Assembly (NCBI GenBank): GCA_965112155.1
Contig: OZ218099.1
Direction: 5' to 3' (one strand)
Length of the DNA: 64,000 bases
Origin: Podarcis liolepis
Taxonomy: Eukaryota
This document shows positions 1 through 25,700 of this stretch, piece by piece (the stretch's first letter is position 1; each line of letters opens with the position of its first letter). The notes beneath the pieces are model-generated. The model worked only from the letters and a program-made list of their open reading frames with translations. It had not been told where the DNA came from and did not search any database. Both the position numbers and the translations under genes were made by a program.

Positions 1-99
1 GAGGCTGCGAGTTAGCCAACCCTTTTGTTGCATTTTGCCACATCCACATGAATGTCGGCCACCACTTGGGGTCATCAGAATCCACCAGTCCCAACACAG

Positions 100-1100
100 G
101 CCCCCCCCATCTGCTTCAGACGTCCAGCGATCCTTGAGGGAGGTTCCAAGGCAGCGTGAGAGGAGTTGGAAATGGCAACTCTCCAGTGGGTAGTTCCCGG
201 CCTGGGCCCGTCTCGGGCTGCTCTTCCTCGCTTCGCGTGGGCCGTCGGGGCGGATTCCTCTCGCTCGGTGCTTGGCTGGGCGGCGGCGCCCTGCGCGAGG
301 TTCCCTCCCTTCCCCAAGCCAGCTCAAGGGAATGGGCAGGGAGGCGGGAGCGCCGGGCGCCTGGGGAGGGACGGGCCCGGCACTGGAGGAGGACGCCACT
401 TGCACCGGCCGACACCGCCGCCGGCGCCGGAGAAGCCAGCAAGGGCCGCTGCCTCCTAGCGCAGGTGGCCACAAGGAAGCCGGCTCAGGTGCTTCCGGGC
501 GGCCGGGGCAGCCAGCGAGAGCCTACAAACTCCAGGCAAGCGGCTGCGGGGAACCGTCGGTGAGTGTGCGCGTCTTTACGCAGGCCGGGACGTCGGTTTT
601 AGGGAGAGGCGGGATCGACCCATAAAGGGACCGAAGCGTGTCCCATTCACTTCCTCGAAAGTGTGGCCGCGGAGGGGGACTATAGATCCGGCCAGAGCCG
701 GCGTGTTTACCTGGAAGGATCCCCACATGGCTCCTCGTGGAACTTCCTAGGCAGCGCGCTTACGGCGGGCGGCCCACCCTGACTTTGCCGCTAGAGGTAT
801 TCCCCCCCCCCCCCCACCTTGGGAGCAAGAAAGCGAGCATGTAGCCTTACCTCGGCCCGGCCCGTTCCCAGAATGTGGATGAGGTCCCGACGAGGTGATG
901 CCCGAGCCTAGACCCCCGACAGCAACGGGAGCCTGGCACGCGCACCGACGGTGCCTGGAGATGCTGTGCATGTATGGCTACCCTGTGAGCGCGCGTTTTG
1001 CCCTCGGGTAAACTGTGGGGGCAAGATTAGCAGGCGGTGGGGTCTCCCCTTTGTCCGATGGAGTGGGAAAGTGCGGAGGAGGCGCTAGCGGGATCTGCTC
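100..1100. promoter_or_regulatory. CpG island / promoter region of LRRC8E
   Basis: Very GC- and CpG-rich compared with the flanks. Contains a consensus splice donor (TCG|GTGAGT, intron starting at 560) upstream of the LRRC8E coding exons. Boundaries approximate. Confidence 0.75.
430..559 (+). other. LRRC8E: Putative non-coding exon 1 of LRRC8E (5' end uncertain)
   Basis: Donor GTGAGT at 560-565 inside the CpG island. The first coding exon has an acceptor only 5 nt before its ATG, so an upstream non-coding exon is required. Confidence 0.55.
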
Positions 1101-7589: not shown

Positions 7590-7727
7590 ATGATCCCGGT
7601 GGCCGAATTCAAGCAGTTCACAGACCAGCAGCCTGCTTTCAAGGTTCTCAAGCCATGGTGGGATGTGTTGGCCGAGTACATCACCATAGCCATGCTGATG
7701 ATAGGAGTTTTTGGCTGCACTTTGCAG
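7590..7727 (+). CDS. LRRC8E: LRRC8E coding exon 1 (46 codons, [10 protein letters not shown]...GCTLQ)
   Basis: Acceptor ttttggcag ending at 7584, ATG at 7590, donor CAG|GTGAGT at 7728. The N-terminus [30 protein letters not shown] matches LRRC8E. Confidence 0.95.
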
Positions 7728-8909
7728 GTGAGTGCGTATGGGGGGAGCCCACGCAGTGCCTAGATGCCGCCATGGTGTCATAGAATCAGAGGGTTGTAGA
7801 GTTGGAAAGGACCCTCGCAATGCAGGCGTCGCAGCTAGAGCATCCGTGAAAGATGGCCATCCAACGTCTGCTTGAAAACCTCCAAGGAAGGAGAATTGGA
7901 ATCATTGGAATCTTGGGGTGATGTTCCACTGCCCATGGGAGAAGAGGCTCTAAATGTTTGGGGGCAGTCTGGGCAAGGGTGGAAATGACCCTAGCACAGA
8001 AATGGTCAACTTCTACAGCCTGGGGGGTTGGATTCTCTGCAGCCCACCACTTGTAAGGGGTGGCGGCCTAGCACTGTGCAGCCTCAGTAATGTAGGCAGG
8101 GAGGCTCTGTTCTCCAAACGTTGAAGACCGACTTCTCTCCTACATGGCAGAGATGAGAGATTGAGTATTGAGTTTACTGTATTCATGCAGCCTTAGTACA
8201 GAGAAGAAGGTATGGGAGCCACAACTTTTAAGATTCTACCCCATGTTACAGAAAGGGCATGAAGTATTAGGTGATATATACCAAAGCAGGCCGGGGAAGG
8301 ACCTCTGTGCCATGACTTCACCTTCTCTTGCCAATGCTTTATCATAACATTCCTCAGATCCAAAGAAGCCTACAGAGCATTAGATCCTTGGGAAGGAAAG
8401 ATAAGACATGTCTCATATAACCCCTCATTCTGTAATCAGTATGGAAAACGCAGCCCTATAGCTGACACAGCATAGAAAATGCATGCAGACGAGTTATTAG
8501 CAGATTTATACAGGGGCAGATTTCCCCTTGGTCCCTTTAGTATTAAGACTAGATTATCAGTTCATTTAAATTAGCTCCATTTTGACTACACATGAAGCAG
8601 TATTAGATATTAGACTTTGTCATTTCAGACTACAGTTGGGGGAGGATCCTTTTTTAATAACACGTAGAACAAAAACTCCTTAAAAGTGAAACCAGCACAT
8701 CAGAAAGAGCTGTTCTAGACCAGCCCACTCCTTGCTATGCTAGTTTTCTACCTGCAGGGACTTTTTTAAAAACATATGAAGAGGTACAGTCCATTCAGCC
8801 ACTTCAAGGCTTTCCTTGTTCATCCCCACCTGATATAAACTGTTGCGTTCTACCACCAGCCTGTTTTCTATCATGTTCCTCTCTTCTCTTTCCTAACCTG
8901 ATGTGACAG

Positions 8910-11162
8910 GTGACACAAGATAAGATTATCTGCCTTCCCAACCATGTGCCTGATGGCACAACCTTCACTGGTGCATCTTGTGAAGATTTCACGAAGAAGA
9001 GAGCCAATGCCTCTGAGCCAATAGGACCCTCCGCCAACCAGCGAATGAATGGATTGAAGAACAACCTAGACCTCCAACAGTACAGCTACATCAATCAGAT
9101 GTGCTATGAGACGGCCCTCCATTGGTATGCCAAATACTTCCCATACCTCGTGGTCATCCACACCCTCATCTTCATGGCGTGCACCTCGTTCTGGTTCAAG
9201 TTTCCTGGGACCAGTTCCAAGATTGAGCATTTTATCTCCATCCTGAGCAAGTGCTTTGACTCGCCCTGGACTACTCGAGCCATCTCTGAAGTCTCTGGGG
9301 ATAACCAGGAAAATGCATTCTTAGAGAAGGGGTACCGGAGGAGGAAAAGCAGTGCTCCCAGCGAGACAGCTGAGCTCAATCCCCCCGGGGGATCGGTGTC
9401 AGAAAAGAAGGTTTCAGAGTCCTCCCCGGTTAGCCTATTGGACAAAAAGGAAGGGGAGCAGGCCAAGGCTCTCTTTGAAAAGGTGAAGAAGTTCCGGCTC
9501 CACGTTGAAAAAGGAGACATCCTTTACACCATGTATATCCGCCAAACCGTTCTCAAAGTCTTCAAGTTTCTCGTCATCATTGTCTACAATGCAGCCTTGG
9601 TTTCCAATATCAGCTTCATTGTGCCATGCACTGTCAGGATGGAGGATATGACGGGCTATGACCATTTCTGCTGCAACCACACCAAAGCCCACCTCTTCTC
9701 CAAACTGGCCATCTGCTACATCTGCTTCCTTGGCATATATGGCATGACGTGTCTCTACACCCTCTACTGGCTGTTTCACCGGCCGCTGAAAGAGTACTCC
9801 TTTCAATTTGCACGCAACGAGACAGGCATCAGCGACATTCCTGACGTCAAGAACGACTTTGCTTTCATGCTCCACCTCATTGACCAGTATGATTCCCTCT
9901 ACTCCAAGCGCTTTGCTGTCTTCCTTTCCGAGGTCAGCGAGTTCAGACTCAAGCAGATCAACCTCAGTCATGAGTGGACGGTGGACAAACTGCGGCAGAA
10001 GCTGCAAACCAACGCCCAAGGCCGGCTGGAGCTCCATCTCTTCATGCTACCAGGGTTGCCTGACACCACCTTTGAGCTGAATGAGCTGCAGTCCCTGAAG
10101 CTGGAGCTCCTCAAAGATGTGACATTCCCACCCTCAGTGACTCAGCTGGCCCAGCTCCAGGAGCTCACACTGATCAACTCTCCCGTCAAGCTCTCTTTCA
10201 CCTCTCTTATGTTCTTCCGTGAGCAGCTGAAGGTAATGACTGTGAAGTTTGATGACATCAAAGATATACCACTATGGACCTACAACTTGAGAGGCTTGGA
10301 AGAGCTGCACATCTCAGGACTTTTCAGTCTAGAGATGGGCCGGGCAGGGACTCTGGAGAACCTGCGTGAGCTGAGGAATCTAAAGACCTTGACTCTGCAC
10401 AGCAACATCTCAAAACTGCCACCTAGCGTGTCTGACGTTGCCGCCCATCTGCAGAAGCTCAGGATCTACAATGATGGGACTAAGCTAGTGACCCTCAACA
10501 ATCTCAAGAAGCTCTTCTCTGTGCAAGAAGTGGCGCTGATAAACTGCAACCTGGAACGCATCCCCCATGCTGTCTTCAGCCTGGTGAACATGCAGCAGTT
10601 GGACCTCAAGGATAACCAGCTGCAGTCCATTGCAGAGATCATCAGCTTCCAGCATTGCCGCAAGCTGGTGTGCCTCAAACTTTGGCACAACCACATTTCC
10701 AGCATTCCTGAACACTTCCGCAAGCTCAAGACCCTAGAGCAGCTTGACCTCAGCCATAACCGCATTGAGGTCCTCCCTTCCCAACTATTCCAGTGTTCTA
10801 GGCTGCACACTTTGGACCTTTCCTATAACAATATCCAGGTCATTCCCCCTGGGATGGGAGTCCTGCAGAGCCTTCAGCATTTTGCCATTTCTCACAACTC
10901 CTTAGAGGCACTGCCAAATGAAATCTTCTTCTGCAAGCAGCTCCGGGTTCTCAAAGTGGGACACAACAAACTGCATCGCCTCTCTGACCGCGTGAGTTGG
11001 CTGCCTTTGCTCTCCACGCTAGACTTGAGAGGAAACCCCCTTCAGGCCCTTCCCTTGGAGATTGGCCAGTGCCCAGTGCTCAAACGGAGTGGCCTGCTGG
11101 TGGAGAGCAGCCTTTATGAGGCGTTGCCTTTGGAAATTAGGGAGAAAATGGAGGATCAGTGA
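8910..11162 (+). CDS. LRRC8E: LRRC8E coding exon 2 (pore domain remainder plus LRR domain); spliced protein 796 aa, volume-regulated anion channel subunit
   Basis: Acceptor gtgacag at 8903-8909, phase 0. Motifs [66 protein letters not shown], an LRR array and C-terminal REKMEDQ. Position just upstream of MAP2K7, as in mammals. Confidence 0.95.
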
Positions 11163-12726: not shown

Positions 12727-13552
12727 CGCACATGTAATGTTCCTAACCCCCCACTTGTCTTTGCTCATAGAGTTGCTTTGTCCTTAGAAACCTCACAATC
12801 TGGTCCGAAATAGTTTAGTTCATATGTCTTCTGCCAGATTCAATACACAGAGGTGGTTGGATAATGATTTCACCTTCCATTTGTTGAGAACTAGTTGCTT
12901 GAGGGAACTTGCACAATAAGGGAGAGGTTGCAGTAGTCCCTGGTAATTATTGTTTTGGTTAATGAAGTCCTAAATTCAGAGCCTGCTGAACAACGAAGGC
13001 TGAAGTCCTGTGCACACATAACGGGAATAAATCCCACTTGCACTTGAGTCAGCATTCATAAGACCCAATAGAAAGGTGGCAAGGAGACAGCCATATCTAT
13101 TTGCACTCTTGCCAGCAGTCCTTGGGACTCAGCTGCTGAGCCTTGGTTTTGACAGGAGCAAGCTGTGCCCTACACTGGGGCAACCAGGCAACCAGCCAGC
13201 CAATGCTTCATACCTGGGAATGGCACAATAGGCCTCATTCCTCATGCCCTGGTGGTTGTTGGAGGAGGAGGAGGAGATGGGTGGGAATGTGAAGCAATGG
13301 GTGGGAAGGAGAACCTGCTATGTGACTCACTGGGAGAAACCAACCAACATAGCTGCATTTTGGGAGTGCTTCTGAGGCCATAAAATTGGAAGAGGCTGTT
13401 CTGCAGCAAGGTTGTAAAACAGGCCTATTGTGCAGGAACATGCTTTAGTAGCATGAATAACACTGTGGTGGGTGGCCTGGTGTTTACATGAGCATGCACC
13501 AAAGTAATTATTTGGCAGTTCACACTTTTGTTTTCCTGGCAAAATGCATTTA

Positions 13553-13770
13553 CAGTGGTACCTCAGGTTAAGAACTTAATTCGTTTCGGAGGTCCGTTCT
13601 TAACCTGAAATTGTTCTTAACCTGAAGCACCACTTTAGCTAATGGGGCCTCCCGCTGCCGCCGTGCCACGATTTCTGTTCTCAACCTGAAGCAAAGTTCT
13701 TAACTCAAGGTACTATTTCTGGGGTAGCGGAGTCTGTAACCTGAAGCGTTTTTAACCTGAGGTACCACTG
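13553..13770. mobile_element. Tc1/mariner (pogo/Tigger-like) MITE, 218 bp
   Basis: TIRs cagtggtacctcaggttaa / ttaacctgaggtaccactg flanked by TA on both sides. Inverted relative to the copy at 19518-19743. Confidence 0.85.
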
Positions 13771-13890
13771 TACTTAAAAGACTTAAATAACATTGAGGGG
13801 CGGGTAGAAGAAATGCCAGCAGAATTAAAACAGATGTAAAACATTGTAAAAGGCCAGAGTCAATGTAAGAGATCTTCAGTTAATTGGGTA

Positions 13891-19045: not shown

Positions 19046-19517
19046 GTAAGTGGGTGCAGGATGACAGCCTAGACTTTGGTTTATGGTTGACACTCAGGAA
19101 ACAGGAGGTTTTTGTGTCTTTGGCAGCTGTATGGCAGGCAGAAACTCAACAGGTTAAGGCAAGCCTTTCCTAGTATGGAAAGCCTCGCCATAACTGTACT
19201 GTCTCTAAGTTTGGGTTATGCCTGACCACTTTGTTAATCAATGACGGCGCTATCAATAGTGCCACACAATGCCCGCTGTACCAGGAGAGGAGCATTCAGT
19301 GTGGCAGCATCAAAACGATGGAACTCCCTCCCAATGTGCATTATGCAAGCGCCTTCTGTTTTATAATTTCAAACACATTTCTGTTTAACCAAGCCTTCCT
19401 TGAAGCGTGACCAGTTCTGTATTTTAGTCATTTATCTCTGAACAGTTTTAATGTTTAACTTTTTATATTGTTCCGTGTAACTTTGTATTGCTCACAGTTT
19501 AGGTATATATATATATA

Positions 19518-19743
19518 CAGTGGTACCTCGGGTTACATACGCTTCAGGTTACAGACTCCACTAACCCAGAAATAGTGCTTCAGGTTAAGAACTTTGCTTC
19601 AGGATAAGAACAGAAATCGTGCTCCGGTGGCACGGCAGCAGCAGGAGGCCCCATTAGCTAAAGTGGTGCTTCAGGTTAAGAACAGTTTCAGGTTAAGAAC
19701 GGACCTCTGGAACGAATTAAGTACTTAACCCGAGGTACCGCTG
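19518..19743. mobile_element. Tc1/mariner (pogo/Tigger-like) MITE, 226 bp
   Basis: TIRs cagtggtacctcgggtta / taacccgaggtaccgctg, sitting in a TA repeat. The interior is the reverse complement of 13553-13770. Confidence 0.85.
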
Positions 19744-19883
19744 TATGTATATGTGTGATGTATATGTGTGCGTGTATATATATATATATATATAAATCAC
19801 TAGCTAAATGTGCTAAACAGACTTTGTTTCAGTGCAATAGCCAAGGATGTTACTCAATTCCCACTTACCATTTGCTTCTAGTG

Positions 19884-21047
19884 ATGTTTAACCTGACAGA
19901 AGTGACCTTCCTCGGTGACGCCCACGCTCGGTTCCAGACTCTAAAGCCTTGGTGGGATGTCCTGATGGACTACTTGGTAGTAGCGATGCTGATGGTCTCT
20001 CTCCTCTCAGGTACTCTGCTGATTTCTGTTGACCATATGACCTGCTTGCCTCTGAATTACAAGCTAAATGAGACCACAGCAGCTATGCTCAAGCCTGGAG
20101 CTATGAACAGTGCCACCAGTGAAGAGTTTTCTGCTGAGAACAGTGGACGCCCAATCAATCTTGACTACCAGCAGTACCTGTACATAAACCATGTCTGCTA
20201 TCAGAATGCTTTGCCTTGGTTCTCCAAGTATTTTCCTTACCTAGCACTTGTCAACTCACTGATTTTAATGGCAAGCAGCAACTTCTGGTTCAGGTACCCT
20301 AAGACGTCCTCAAAGATCGAACACTTCTTATCCATCCTCATGAAATGCTTCGAGTCACCTTGGACCATCAAGGCTGTCTCTGAAATGGTCTACCAGAATT
20401 TCCTAGACCTACCCCAAACCACGGATACTAGAGGATGTCAAGAACAATTTATTTCCCCTTCATCCTCTCCTATCCTTGACTGGAAGGAGAGGGAGCAGGG
20501 CCGGGCACTCTTTGAGAAGATCTGCAGATTCAGGGCACATGCTGAAGGTGCTAGCTTGATTTATATGGTCTACATGGGACAATCAATCTTCAGAGTTGCC
20601 AAGATCCTAACTGTGCTGGGCTACACCTCAAACTGCATAGGAGCCATCTCCTTTGAACATGTTTGCTGGCTGGACACAGAGAACCTGACCGGCTACTCTG
20701 TTTTCCTCTGTAACCACAGCTTGGCTTTCATTCTGCAGAAGTTGATGGTGACCTACCTGTTCTTGGTATTCCTCTATGGGGTGCTGGGGGCTTACCCACT
20801 GTGGTGGCTGCTGTGGCAGCCGCTGCAGAAGTATTCCTTTAAGCAAATGCGAAAAGACAGTCACTTTCTTGGCATCCCAGATGTCTACAACGACTTTGCT
20901 TTCCTCCTGCACATGGCTGATCAGTGCGACCAGCTATACTCCTGGTGGTTTGCCATCTTCCTCTCAGCCATGAGCAAGAGCTCTTTGCTGGATGTGGGCC
21001 TTGAACACAAGGCAAGTATTGAAGGGCTGCAGCTGCATGTGCATTGA
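19884..21047 (+). CDS. LRRC8D-like protein truncated before the LRR domain (387 aa; pannexin-like four-TM pore domain only)
   Basis: Acceptor tttgcttctag at 19871-19881, then ATG at 19884. Motifs [95 protein letters not shown] are D-type rather than C/E-type. There is no intron after TM1, as in LRRC8B/D. Whether it is functional or a pseudogene is unresolved. Confidence 0.8.
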   Translation: MFNLTEVTFLGDAHARFQTLKPWWDVLMDYLVVAMLMVSLLSGTLLISVDHMTCLPLNYKLNETTAAMLKPGAMNSATSEEFSAENSGRPINLDYQQYLYINHVCYQNALPWFSKYFPYLALVNSLILMASSNFWFRYPKTSSKIEHFLSILMKCFESPWTIKAVSEMVYQNFLDLPQTTDTRGCQEQFISPSSSPILDWKEREQGRALFEKICRFRAHAEGASLIYMVYMGQSIFRVAKILTVLGYTSNCIGAISFEHVCWLDTENLTGYSVFLCNHSLAFILQKLMVTYLFLVFLYGVLGAYPLWWLLWQPLQKYSFKQMRKDSHFLGIPDVYNDFAFLLHMADQCDQLYSWWFAIFLSAMSKSSLLDVGLEHKASIEGLQLHVH

Positions 21048-21320
21048 GACTCAAGGGCATCAGAGAACTAAGGCTTCACAAGCTGCCAGGCTACCTAGGG
21101 CCCTCTTCTGTGAAATGGAAGTCCTGAAGCTTGCAAACAGTCCCAGACTAAAGCACCCAGAAAAATAGGTATACTAACCTTTCTCAATCCTCGCTGGTCA
21201 AGATGGGCCCCACTGACCTAGGAAGGCCCACAGTATTCCACATCACATTTCCTGACATTACAACCTGGGGTTGTCTCTCTCAGGGGTCTCCACCAGTATC
21301 TCTCTAGCAACTTTGGCAAG
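21048..21320 (+). pseudogene. Decayed remnant of the first LRRs of the LRRC8D-like gene
   Basis: Fragments in alternating frames: RELRLHKLPG, LPRALFCEMEVLKL, KAPRKIGILTFL, VFHITFPDITTW, VVSLRGLHQYLSSNF. They are collinear with LRRC8E in this window ([27 protein letters not shown], ...[29 protein letters not shown]). Confidence 0.7.
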
Positions 21321-21389
21321 ATGAAAGGTTCAGACCTGTCCTTGTTGGGCTGGGATTATGAATATGGATTTCATATGGATATGGAAGAA

Positions 21390-21572
21390 GGGGTACAGCT
21401 CAATAGTTAAGCATGGGGTTTGTATGCAAAAGATCCTGGGTTCAATCGTTGGCATCTCCAGTTAGGGCTAGGAAAGGCTCCTGTCTGAAACCATGGAGAA
21501 CTGCAGCCGGTCAGTAATACTGATCTAGACAGATCAAGAGTCTGATCCAGTTTCAGGAGCCTCTGATATTCT
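21390..21572 (+). mobile_element. tRNA-derived SINE
   Basis: A-box-like cagctcaatagttaagca and B-box-like gggttcaatcg, followed by ggcatctccagttagggctaggaaag...ctgaaacc. Confidence 0.65.
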
Positions 21573-21666
21573 GATTAACTGAGGGCTGAAGATAAGGCAA
21601 ATTCACAACTGGATCCTTTAACTTTCGTTTCTATTTTAATGCAGTACTTTTTATTAGCTGCTCTGC

Positions 21667-21672
21667 AATAAA
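21667..21672 (+). terminator. Candidate poly(A) signal for the LRRC8D-like gene
   Basis: First AATAAA seen downstream of the stop codon at 21047. Confidence 0.3.
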
Positions 21673-22254
21673 AACAACAGGTACCTGCATTGCCTGTGAA
21701 CTTTCCTCCCTGGGGTTAATAACAGTGCTCTCTCTCTCTCTCTGTGTGTGTGTGTATGTTGGGGGGGAGGGATCAAGGAATTGGTACCAATAATTGGAAA
21801 ACTTCAATAGAAACCAAAGCCTCTTCTGTATTTCTGCTTAAAACAGCAACAACAACAACAAATAATACACTGACCTGGGAATAAGTCCAATAGGGACATA
21901 CTTTTGAGTAAATATGCATAGGATTTCTGTAGCATTTATTACATCTGTTTTAGCCCTGAGATATTAACAGAGAAGCAGATTTGAGCTGGCATGATTTCCC
22001 TGAGCTATGCTGAAAGTAAACACACGAGCACATACAAATTAATGTATAAAACTAACATTTTCTCCAAATGATCTTTTCAATGTTTGTTTGTTTGTAAAAA
22101 AAGAATTGCAGGACTCTACAGTTTCAGTTTAAGAGTGTAAGGAGTTGTAGGTAGTGAAGTGATCCACTTTCTGAAACCAAAGGAGAATATTAGTCATATG
22201 ATGGCACAATGGGCCATCAGTGTGCCTGGCTGTTAACCAGAAGGTTGGGACGGC

Positions 22255-22336
22255 TGTGGGCAGGATTCCTGCATTGCGGGAGGTTGGACTAGATGACCCT
22301 TGGGGTCCCTTCCAACCGTATAATTCTATGATTCTG
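22255..22336 (+). mobile_element. CR1-type LINE 3' end fragment
   Basis: ttcctgcattgcgggaggttggactagatgacccttggggtcccttccaacc...attctatgattct. Confidence 0.65.
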
Positions 22337-23352
22337 TTTCCAAGCCGTTCATATGTTAATGAAACAAGTGTGCCAAAACAAAGAAGATATGTCCTCCTGC
22401 ATCTCCCTTTCCTGCCTGTCTTACAGGAATGACACTTTAAGGATGTATGAAAAATGTGTCAATGAGACACTGACATAAGAGGTGTTTCTTACAGCAAGAA
22501 TGAAAACTCACCATAACCTGGAGAGGCCTTGTAGCCCTGCAGTCAGAAACAATGATTTACAGTACAATCCTATACATGCCTATCCAGCAGTTCTATTGTG
22601 GTTAATGGGGCTTCCTAAAGTAAGTGCAAATAGGATTGCAGTCTTCTTAACTGGTAAGCAGATTGACAAAGGGCTAGTCCACACTTTCACTTATGTCATG
22701 CATAGAAAGCATGGGTCCAAGCAGTTCCCTGCAGATTTCTGCATGACCCACACTTTCAAGGCATGGGTCCAAGCAGTTTCCCCCTTGCCCCACTCCTTTC
22801 CAATTGAAAATCTGCTCTTTAGCAGCAGGATGAGAGGAAGTGTGGATAAGCTGGGAGAGCGAGCTCACAAAGTAACCTTAGTAGTCTCCAGTTAAATGAG
22901 ACAGCTCTGTGGTGTCCCCAGTTCCAAAAACAATTCAGGACAATGTCCCTTATTTTAAACACAAACAAGGAAGAATGCCAAAAACAGAAAGGAGCAACAT
23001 AGTGGAACTCAGAAGACAAAAAGTACTGTACTCCCATAGAAATGAAATGGCCTGTTATGGTTTGCATTTTGCTGGAAGAAACCTATATTATTATCAGAAT
23101 GTTCTGGCTGAAGGCAAAACATACTTAACTGTAGCTAAAGTCACACAGGTGATGTTATCTGAATTAGAGCTGACAGACCATGGCAGGAAAGTCAAAGGAA
23201 AACCAGTACGTAAAACTAATTAACGCATCTCCCCCCCCCCCCCGCTAGCATTGCACCTTCCACAGAAAAATTATAGGAGTCTGTAAGGATTCAACATTTC
23301 CTTCTGATACAATCTGTATATGTATTTTTATGTAGGTAAGAATCAAGTAGGT

Positions 23353-23490
23353 AAGGTGTGGGGAACCCATGGTCCTTCTCCACACATTTCTAGACTACAT
23401 GTCCTATCATCCTTGATCCTTAGTAATGTCAGCTGATGGTGATGGGAGTTGGAATCCATCATCTGGAGGGTCTGAGGTTCCCCACCCCTG
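23353..23490. mobile_element. Palindromic hAT-type MITE
   Basis: Ends aaggtgtggggaacc / ggttccccacccctg with a degenerate 8-bp TSD (aagtaggt / aagtagaa). Related copies at 31386, ~35490, 39844 and ~43626. Confidence 0.7.
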
Positions 23491-23661
23491 AAGTAGAAGG
23501 CATATATTTAAAATTAAAGATGTATGTGTCTTAGGATGGAGGCGTGTGCACACGTATATACACATGCAGTTTTCTTCTTAAACCCTAACTTGATCACCAT
23601 CTAAGAGAATGTAATAAAGGCTTGCTTTGCTCTGTACTTTGGAAGAACGTTCCCTCAGTGG

Positions 23662-23823
23662 AAGGTGGAAGAACGTTCCCTCAGTTTCTTTACATTTCCA
23701 ACACTTATTGTCTGGCAAATGATATATTTTTGCAAGCTTGACTGGGGCCATGTACCACCTATATATCATTTTCATAATATTTTCTTTCAGGGCATTATAT
23801 GCCGTAAATTTCACACCAGTGGG
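23662..23823 (-). mobile_element. L1/Tx1-clade LINE ORF2 C-terminal fragment
   Basis: Minus-strand translation KMIYRWYMAPVKLAKIYHLPDNKCWKCKETEGTFFH resembles the cysteine-rich (CxxC..H) C-terminal region of non-mammalian L1-clade ORF2. Confidence 0.75.
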
Positions 23824-23899
23824 GTAGCTGTTATCTCATAACATGCTTTCCCATTTACTTCTTCATGCAGCGCATAGTTAAACTATGAAACAGGAGGCA

Positions 23900-24158
23900 G
23901 TGATGGACAAAATGTTGGACAGCTTTTGAAGAGGATTAGACAAGATTCATGGAGGATGCTGTCAGAGGCTACCAGCTGTGATGGCTACTAGCTCTGCCTC
24001 CACTGCTGGAGACAAAATGCTTCTGAATACCAGCTGCTGGAAGCCACAGGCAGGGAGAGTGCCCTTGTCCTCCTTGTGAGTTTCCAACAGGCGTCTGGGT
24101 GGCCACTGTGAGAACAGGATGTTGGATTAGATGGGCCAGAAGGCTCTTCTTATGTTCG
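23900..24158 (+). mobile_element. Older CR1-like 3' fragment
   Basis: cttttgaagaggattagacaagattcatggaggat...gatgttggattagatgggcc...ctcttcttatgttc. Confidence 0.5.
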
Positions 24159-24859
24159 CACCACACCCTTAAAAGTCCACAGTTCACATTTTAGATGGGA
24201 AACAGATCCGCAGCAACTCTAAGGAATATACTGTACCGGTAAGCCCAGCTCTTTAGACTCCCAGACCTGTACTCTGTTACACTGGATGTCCCAGCAAACA
24301 TTCTATCATGGGTACTCCACAATACCAAGAAATAGACAACCTTATAAAAAACCTAGCAAACTGTGATTCCCAGCGACCTTTCATGAGGTTGTAGCTGGTT
24401 CCATTGGTTCCCTATCTGCGCTTCCTAGTTTCCTATTTGATTCAACAGGTCGGACCTAGCAGAAGCCAGTGCGACAGCTCCCACTAGTGCAATTCCCTGC
24501 AGTGCAATGCATCCTGCTCCGGAGTGTGGGGAGAACCCCCAGAACAGTGCAGGCAGGGGGTTGGGGAGACGCGAGAAAAGGCGGCATATAAATGCAACAA
24601 GTACACAAATTCTAAAGAAGCACAAAGGAAACCCAAGCGCAGGCAGGAAAAAATGCTCTTCCGTATTTGGAGCATTTCAGCTCCGGCTGGTCTTCAAGTG
24701 TGAGAGGTACGTGCCGTAGAATCACAGAACTGTAGAGTTGGACTCAGAGGGTCATCTACTCCAACCCCTGCAGTAATATTTTGCTCCCCGCGGAACTTGC
24801 ACCCAGGACCCTGAGTTTAAGAGCCTCAGGTTCTATTGACTGAGCAGCATCTTCTAACA

Positions 24860-25700
24860 CCCCTCCGACCCCGTCATGACTCCCGGACATGCTCCCTAGT
24901 CCCCATCAAAGCTGAGTGGAGATGCACGAATAGGGAACGTCCGAAATATCATTGACGGCCAGGCGGTGCGGATACTGAGCTCGGGCAGCGCTTTGGTGCC
25001 CTCGCGCATGCGCGAGCAAGGAAAAGCCGCGAGGCAAAACAAGCACAGCGGGCAAAAGCGGAGCCGTGTCTTTGCGGTGGGCGGAGGAGGAGGATGATAA
25101 TATGGTGGCCTGGTTGGTCCTTTCGGCGCGTGCGCACTGCGGTGTTTGTGTATTCTGGCTGCGCGGTGGCGGCAGCGTCGGCGGCTCCGGGGGAGGGGGG
25201 GAAGATGGCGGCGTCCTCGCTGGAGCAGAAACTGTCCCGCTTGGAGGCCAAGCTGAAGCAGGAGAACAGGGAGGCCCGGAGGCGCATCGACCTCAACTTG
25301 GACATCAGTCCGGCCCGGACTCGGCCTAGTAAGGGAGGCTTTGAGGGGGAAACGGGGGCGGCGGCGGCGGCAGGGGAGGCTCCGCGGCAGGCCCCCCCCC
25401 CTTGGGCGACTGACACGGGCCCGCCTGGGCAGGAGCCCCGGGGCCGGAGGGATGCGGGGCGGGGATGGGAAGAGCCGAGCTGCCCCGGAGAGGGGCCGGT
25501 AGGGAAAGGTCCTCCCGGAGAAGCGAAGGGGTCGAGAAACCCGGGGCGGGGAAACAAGGGGGCTCTTGTTTACTACGGAGCCTGGGGGAGGCGGAGGCCC
25601 AAGGCACACCGGGGCAGGGAGAAAGAAGAGCGAGGGGAAAGGTAAAGAATCCCGTGGGGAAGGGACTTGGAGGAAGGCGTGGGCGTGGGGGGCGGGGAAG
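24860..25700. promoter_or_regulatory. CpG island / MAP2K7 promoter with NRF1-like and YY1-like motifs
   Basis: CpG-rich. Palindrome CTCGCGCATGCGCGAG at 25001-25016 and GCGCGTGCGCA at 25126-25136 match the NRF1 consensus. AAGATGGCGGC at 25202-25212 matches the YY1 consensus and overlaps the start codon. Confidence 0.75.
25205..25328 (+). CDS. MAP2K7: MAP2K7 exon 1
   Basis: MAASSLEQKLSRLEAKLKQENREARRRIDLNLDISPARTRP; 124 nt, donor gtaagg at 25329. Confidence 0.95.

Follow-up and report, generated by a model that had tools for sequence, protein, structure and literature searches.

A probable pore-only LRRC8 subunit retained in squamates after loss of its leucine-rich repeats

In a stretch of 64,000 nucleotides of Podarcis liolepis (GenBank assembly GCA_965112155.1, contig OZ218099.1; hereafter the window) we describe a gene of the LRRC8 family that very probably encodes a pore-only channel subunit kept under selection, and not the relic of a dead paralogue. 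LRRC8 channels are built from a pannexin-like pore fused to leucine-rich repeat (LRR) domains, whose movement is thought to drive gating; about 15-17 repeats make up the C-terminal domain of the family, and the five mammalian LRRC8 subunits all retain LRR domains. The Podarcis gene is an uninterrupted open reading frame (ORF) of 387 codons on the plus strand, which runs from the ATG at 19884 to 21044 and is closed by a TGA at 21045-21047 (19884-21047 with the stop codon). It is predicted to encode the N-terminus, the four transmembrane (TM) helices, the disulfide-bonded extracellular loops and the intracellular helical subdomain of an LRRC8 protein, and no LRR domain. RefSeq labels the gene 'LRRC8D-like', and it appears to be uncharacterised.

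Identity and conservation of the pore-only protein

Our Pfam search, in which matches were considered at E values up to 0.01, recognised a single domain in the ORF protein, PF12534, the pannexin-like TM region of LRRC8 (E 6.2e-109, with the profile covered in two stretches), in agreement with the preliminary description of this DNA, which had read an intact LRRC8 pore domain from the letters of the window alone. At the same threshold neither a pannexin or innexin profile nor an LRR domain was found in the protein, so that the C-terminal repeats of the family are missing from it. With PF12534 present and the LRR domain absent, the protein is therefore best regarded as an LRRC8 by descent, not by architecture. 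Its closest solved relative in the PDB is LRRC8D (E 3e-116), LRRC8A and LRRC8C being next. An AlphaFold2 model built on a 45-sequence alignment (predicted local distance difference test, pLDDT, 63; predicted template modelling score 0.56) displays the four TM helices, extracellular strands and C-terminal helices expected of such a protein, and Foldseek matched this model to LRRC8 pore domains with an E value of 2e-26 and a target-normalised TM-score of 0.82. The four extracellular cysteines and the NET and NLT sequons were all found where they had been reported; the cysteines C54 (in TCLP), C105 (HVCY), C261 (HVCW) and C276 (FLCNH) are invariant or nearly so among the squamate orthologues and in the wider LRRC8 family.

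Alignments to PDB entries translate ORF residues into LRRC8A numbering by the addition of 34 and, given that LRRC8C L400 corresponds to LRRC8A L402 (PMC13586329), into LRRC8C numbering by the addition of 32. The last residue, 387, thus matches LRRC8A 421 and LRRC8C 419, just ahead of the first LRR strand. By these alignments the ORF terminates at the boundary between the pore and LRR domains, as the preliminary description had it.

Pore-only 'LRRC8D-like' proteins of 377-432 amino acids are annotated in every major squamate group, as revealed by a protein search limited to lengths of 213-677 amino acids. They include those of the lacertids Podarcis raffonei, P. muralis, P. lilfordi, Lacerta agilis and Zootoca (all of 387 amino acids), the amphisbaenian Rhineura, the iguanians Pogona, Phrynocephalus, Sceloporus and Anolis sagrei, the anguimorphs Elgaria and Varanus, the cordylid and skink representatives Hemicordylus and Lerista, the geckos Eublepharis and Sphaerodactylus, and the snakes Python, Protobothrops and Crotalus. 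The models stem from several independent annotation pipelines and none of them is flagged as low quality, and neutrality would predict no intact copy in any clade. The position of the stop differs between squamate families (equivalents of residues 377, 381, 383, 387 and 392, with proteins of up to 432 amino acids); all of the proteins keep the terminal helices and, unconstrained tails aside, they end at the equivalents of LRRC8C 409-419.

The window is nearest to P. muralis (98% identity, 8 differences). P. muralis and P. raffonei share its C-terminus (...LQLHVH followed by the stop) unchanged, and Zootoca and Lacerta depart from it at 1-2 residues (LQLRVH in L. agilis). Because four other lacertid species share the same or nearly the same 387-residue C-terminus, an assembly error is unlikely. 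The explanation that the stop and the frameshifts behind it are sequencing errors, and that an assembly or annotation artefact conceals a true gene of full length, is contradicted by these matching ends and also by the lack of LRR coding sequence from 21166 as far as the MAP2K7 promoter (about 25000); we consider it scarcely credible.

The tests for selection rest on protein sequences. Parsimony placed 672 amino-acid changes in 375 pore-domain columns of an 18-taxon squamate tree and, at 0.062 nonsense per missense change as given by the codon make-up of the ORF, a neutral gene should have acquired about 42 nonsense events, whereas no stop was found in the pore domain of the 18 taxa (P about 1e-18). 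Stops scattered through the pore region of lizard orthologues, which the preliminary description had named among the observations that would speak against its proposal, were thus seen in none of the 18 squamate taxa in this protein-level search. The changes are clustered (variance 4.27 versus a mean of 1.79), leaving 148 columns unchanged versus 62.5 expected under a Poisson distribution. When squamate conservation was compared with that of full-length LRRC8D and LRRC8D-like proteins, 79 of the 130 family-invariant columns turned out to be invariant in squamates too, versus 18 of the 97 variable ones (Spearman 0.41, p 3e-16). This constraint ends at about residue 376, which is the domain boundary: residues 376-387 have a mean conservation of 0.94 in the full-length relatives versus 0.42 among the squamate orthologues. 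Taken together, these patterns indicate that the pore half has been kept under purifying selection, and the squamate-wide orthologues, the lack of stops and a conservation that mirrors full-length LRRC8 support the earlier suggestion that the pore domain was retained by selection once the LRRs had gone. A decaying pseudogene, in which the first 1161 nucleotides of a dead LRRC8 paralogue happened to stay open as a neutral relic, would fit the destroyed LRR half of the gene and its high rate of change. Nonetheless, it is very improbable in view of the intact orthologous ORFs in every major squamate clade, the absence of the roughly 42 expected nonsense changes, a strong among-site rate variation that tracks family constraint and a drop of conservation exactly at the end of the domain.

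Several observations weigh against the reading of the gene as a selected pore-only subunit. The path from the crown to the tips amounts to 0.46 substitutions per site versus 0.05 for canonical LRRC8D, i.e. evolution is about 9-fold faster, and constraint on the pore half appears relaxed relative to canonical LRRC8D. At 13 family-invariant sites the squamate consensus residue is a different one, and the window itself carries 7 private substitutions relative to P. muralis, one of which, R355W, falls on an Arg that is nearly invariant in the family. The confidence of the AlphaFold2 model (pLDDT 63) is only moderate, and no CpG island or other obvious promoter was found near the ORF. No colubrid or elapid orthologue was seen in the protein search, which detects annotated or intact ORFs only, lineages with broken copies being invisible to it.

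Several of the changed sites are nearly fixed in squamates, among them K354W (22 of 23 sequences), E320K and Y113F. The ORF reads YSWWF and DWKEREQ at two motifs that had been described as drifted from the family sequence. This description has to be largely withdrawn: YSWRF, with K354W, and DWKDREQ are fixed across squamates and therefore represent squamate-wide states, W354 being common to squamates and R355W alone, which turns YSWRF into YSWWF, private to the window. Replacements specific to squamates showed no significant excess in the intracellular subdomain (Fisher p 0.62), and this idea was dropped.

The private changes bear on a further explanation, according to which the gene is functional in squamates and, in this species or lineage, relaxed and starting to pseudogenise. 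Seven of the eight differences from P. muralis are private to the window (N75, Q178, S234, L301, W311, K324 and W355), its terminal branch measures 0.029 versus 0.004 for P. muralis, and R355W and E324K strike residues that are nearly invariant in the family, all of which would fit such a beginning. However, the ORF is fully intact, the terminal branches of P. raffonei and Zootoca are similarly long, Trp at position 311 is found also in geckos, Python and Phrynocephalus, and the 7:1 asymmetry of private changes is not significant (two-sided binomial about 0.07). We therefore hold incipient pseudogenisation to be distinctly unlikely. As an aside, the residues 75, 178, 234, 301, 311, 324 and 355, whose states are private to the window when four other lacertids are compared, comprise two Arg-to-Trp changes, of the kind produced by CpG transitions, and P. 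muralis is nearly without private changes.

Along the plus strand, the coding sequence opens with the N-terminal pore-lining segment and TM1 (residues 1-48, positions 19884-20027; a helix at 23-48 in the AlphaFold2 model), where the LKPWWD motif is invariant across the LRRC8 family. Alignments place the first extracellular loop (EL1) at residues 49-111 (20028-20216), with C54, C105, the NET sequon and Tyr95. This tyrosine occupies the position of LRRC8D Phe143, which we take to be the pore constriction. TM2 and the first intracellular loop (IL1; residues 112-224, 20217-20555) form the block of highest conservation as judged from invariant alignment columns, and are followed by TM3, the second extracellular loop, with C261, C276 and the NLT sequon, and TM4 (residues 225-311, 20556-20816; alignment and AlphaFold2 model). 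The C-terminal helices of the intracellular subdomain, delimited by residue mapping and conservation, extend over residues 312-375 (20817-21008), in which I358 is the equivalent of LRRC8A V392 and L368 that of LRRC8A L402 and LRRC8C L400. The remaining residues, 376-387 (21009-21044), form a tail that shows no constraint and retains the ancestral frame.

As for the transcript, a putative splice acceptor, read from the sequence as a polypyrimidine tract plus AG (ttgcttctag, 19869-19881, plus strand), sits 2 nt before the ATG and suggests that a 5'-untranslated exon lies upstream. The sole canonical polyadenylation signal within 2 kb past the stop is an AATAAA at 21667-21672 on the plus strand. 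A GC-type donor look-alike (AAG/GCAAGT, 21010-21018), lying where conservation ends, was considered as a site for splicing on another C-terminus and rejected, because the tails of other squamates stay in the ancestral frame and no LRR exon follows downstream. There is also an acceptor look-alike of the polypyrimidine-AG type inside the ORF, at about 20001-20010, which could be the source of the Podarcis 'isoform X2' models of 336 amino acids that start at Met52.

A second LRRC8D-type lineage

An exhaustive profile search, together with a second search started from a lungfish match, yielded a set of full-length 'LRRC8D-like' proteins of about 810-840 amino acids in a chimaera, sharks, rays, coelacanth, lungfish, bichir, axolotl and caecilians, which stand beside canonical LRRC8D within the same species; the lungfish possesses two such copies. 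Turtles of both suborders contribute orthologues of about 790 amino acids with LRR Pfam domains, and some pore-only models of sea turtles are partial predictions. In a tree of 51 rows inferred with IQ-TREE under LG+C20, canonical LRRC8D (support 91/99) and the D-like proteins (99/95) form separate clades and, inside the latter, tetrapods (97/93), turtles plus squamates (96/94) and squamates (100/100) are recovered, with a squamate topology resembling that of the species tree. The approximately unbiased test rejects a tree that puts the genes of squamates and turtles within the canonical LRRC8D of tetrapods (delta lnL 113, p 4.7e-6). The phylogeny thus indicates that the gene descends from an old second LRRC8D-type paralogue, whose copy in the window adjoins LRRC8E.

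The lineage is of full length in cartilaginous fishes, coelacanth, lungfish, amphibians and turtles, and the LRRs would therefore have been lost on the squamate stem; the most parsimonious reading is a single loss of the LRR half after squamates and turtles had parted. No members from mammals, birds, crocodilians or tuatara were among the search matches (for mammals and birds, among the top matches), and their absence was not tested rigorously. The papers that we searched treat LRRC8 as a five-member family, and neither a natural LRRC8 without LRRs nor a sixth lineage of the family was found described in this literature, which mostly excludes subscription journals. The D-like proteins provide evidence for such a sixth lineage.

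Remnants behind the stop and genomic surroundings

The preliminary description had reported about 270 nt of LRR homology behind the stop, broken by about five frameshifts. A frameshifted remnant with stops is indeed there; its recoverable extent is smaller, since LRR remnants could be retrieved only at about 21060-21165 on the plus strand (some 105 nt), split over two reading frames and implying at least two frameshifts plus stops. This stretch resembles the start of the LRR domain (LRRNT/LRR1): 'RELRLHKLPG' in one frame recalls the family motif 'ELxLFMLxG', and 'LPRALFCEMEVLKLANSPRLKHPEK' in the other recalls 'LPRAVFQMIDLEVLKLELIPDVKLPSK'. The match is weak in both tblastn (E 0.5-2.6) and hidden Markov model (HMM) searches, where 5.5 bits make it the top match of the region. 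Among the 3443 stop-free pieces into which the window divides it ranks third, and what makes it credible is chiefly where it lies, its strand and its order.

Beyond this remnant, no LRR-like signal was detectable by tblastn or HMM on either strand of 21166-25000, and the remaining LRR domain appears to have been deleted or to have changed past recognition. Three LRR-like tblastn matches further on (22542-22637, 22626-22721 and 23595-23729, E 0.7-7) were rejected as chance, because they are out of order with respect to the protein and without HMM support. Shortly past the last remnant, the segment 21340-21545 has by eye the look of a short interspersed nuclear element derived from a tRNA (…ggggtacagctcaatagttaagcatg…ggttcaatcg…); ARAGORN called no tRNA-like element near the ORF or at 21340-21545. 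A 137-codon ORF on the plus strand (22482-22895) lies between the LRR-less gene and MAP2K7 and has only chance-level LRR-like matches (E 2-7).

Upstream, the window contains a full-length LRRC8E on the plus strand (7590-11162), whose N-terminus and TM1 are encoded by an exon at about 7590-7727, separated by an intron from the main coding exon at 8907-11162; both exons were searched separately and never joined. The LRRC8E intron lies directly after TM1 (the exon ends ...GVFGCTLQ), where the LRR-less gene has none. The two genes share 40% identity only, and the LRR-less ORF is therefore not a recent tandem copy of its neighbour. Downstream, an ORF beginning MAASSLEQKLSRLEAKLKQENREARRRIDLNLDISP at about 25205-25312, presumably exon 1 of MAP2K7, sits inside a CpG island (25001-25500). 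The only other CpG island of the window (1-1000) probably represents the promoter of LRRC8E. An interspersed repeat of about 230 nt is present in two inverted copies (13551-13772 and 19516-19745, 86-93% complementary), one of which ends about 140 nt upstream of the ATG of the ORF, beside (TA)n and (TG)n microsatellites at about 19740-19795.

The order of the window, LRRC8E followed by the pore-only ORF, recurs in a gene model of Crotalus horridus that fuses both, and whose LRRC8E part is 79% identical to the second LRRC8E exon of the window. On a single contig, Ranitomeya also encodes a D-like protein together with an LRRC8E protein.

Truncation precedents, proposed function and comparison with known systems

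How a subunit without LRRs may behave can be judged from truncated human LRRC8C. A protein cut at L400 plus 7 residues assembles and renders LRRC8A/C channels constitutively active, t419 assembles robustly and gives very low currents with LRRC8A and little swelling activation, and t379 is not expressed; the homomeric pore-only LRRC8C is structurally loose (PMC11729881). In LRRC8A, V392 and L402 in the terminal helices belong to a gating hotspot according to a 2026 study (PMC13586329). The squamate proteins have Ile at the V392 position and the fixed Trp four residues upstream of it, and the L400 construct corresponds to a cut 19 residues before the equivalent of the ORF end (LRRC8C 419). Pore-only chains are also found in the PDB for LRRC8C (9ezc, 414 amino acids) and LRRC8D (9t5p chain E, 458 amino acids).

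Since these solved pore-only constructs still oligomerise, co-assembly of the squamate protein with LRRC8A and other LRRC8 subunits, by way of the pore domain, is the most likely mode of action. Heteromeric volume-regulated anion channels (VRACs) would then carry fewer LRR gating modules per channel, by which their basal activity or swelling sensitivity might be altered. Damping of the VRAC current would fit t419 best and is slightly favoured, because that protein assembles in human LRRC8C and yet gives very low currents; the direction of the effect is left open by the cut 19 residues earlier, which yields constitutively open channels. The roles put forward in the preliminary description (VRAC modulator, dominant-negative partner or channel with altered gating) may accordingly be said to have published analogues in human LRRC8C truncations (PMC11729881). 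By analogy with these constructs, we regard the VRAC-modulator mechanism taken by itself as about an even call, and the whole explanation, that is, a selected pore-only subunit combined with this mechanism, as probable. It is tempting to speculate, somewhat more hesitantly, on a sixth type of VRAC subunit in squamates, one without the LRR gating module, which would tune basal activity or swelling sensitivity via co-assembly with LRRC8A.

The main functional rival is a protein working outside VRACs, either as an LRR-independent homomeric channel of the pannexin type or in intracellular membranes. Its architecture of four TM helices without LRRs equals that of pannexins, and the conserved N-terminus, four cysteines and pore-lining positions would suit a homomeric channel as well. 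In addition, family-invariant residues of the intracellular subdomain were replaced and then fixed (K354W, E320K), as if a former LRR-coupling surface had been remodelled. On the other hand, LRRC8 subunits other than LRRC8A as a rule rely on LRRC8A for delivery to the cell surface, a dependence that counts against a homomeric channel, as does the structural looseness of homomeric pore-only LRRC8C (PMC11729881). Altogether, this explanation seems to us rather unlikely, and a subunit of LRRC8A-containing heteromers is the function that we favour.

If squamates do possess such a sixth type of VRAC subunit, the gene would be the selected physiological counterpart of a pathogenic human LRRC8C truncation and would show directly that channels can be tuned by how many LRR domains they carry. 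The gene is relevant, too, to the question of why the human LRRC8C truncation is dominant and pathogenic, yet a cut 19 residues later is benign. The intracellular subdomain offers a set of squamate substitutions at its gating hotspot that were either tolerated or selected in evolution. Squamates number roughly 11,000 species and their common ancestor lived about 200 million years ago; a pore-only subunit retained since then amounts to a natural test of an LRR-less subunit in a heteromer.

Among the known systems, canonical LRRC8D (human and mouse; PDB 6m04 and 9dx7) has the same pore fold, with 46-48% identity in Foldseek structural alignments, the same four extracellular cysteines and, likewise, a coding exon without an intron after TM1. 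It is not, however, the orthologue of the LRR-less gene, which belongs to the sister D-like lineage, lacks the LRR domain, has shorter EL1 and IL1 loops and Tyr instead of Phe at F143, and adjoins LRRC8E, whereas canonical LRRC8D adjoins LRRC8C. The orthologous proteins are those of the full-length D-like lineage (support 99/95; e.g. XP_043940464 of Protopterus and the turtle proteins of about 790 amino acids), which share 50-58% pore-domain identity and the NLDYQQY motif with the ORF; they keep a complete LRR domain, whereas in squamates the genes stop at the pore/LRR boundary and have a higher rate of evolution.

Pore-only LRRC8 proteins are otherwise represented by the human LRRC8C truncations L400, t419 and t379 (Quinodoz et al. 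2024, PMC11729881) and by the LRRC8A truncation of the ebouriffe mouse. Human LRRC8C t419 ends where lacertid residue 387 does, and t419 and L400 constructs still assemble. These are pathogenic or engineered alleles, whereas the squamate gene is a separate, apparently selected gene in every major group sampled, with fixed substitutions of its own in the same subdomain (K354W and V-to-I at the LRRC8A V392 position). Finally, pannexins have the same four-TM large-pore layout without LRRs. By loss of its repeats an LRRC8 subunit appears to have returned to this pannexin-like domain layout, while it is LRRC8 by descent and has no membership in the pannexins by sequence.

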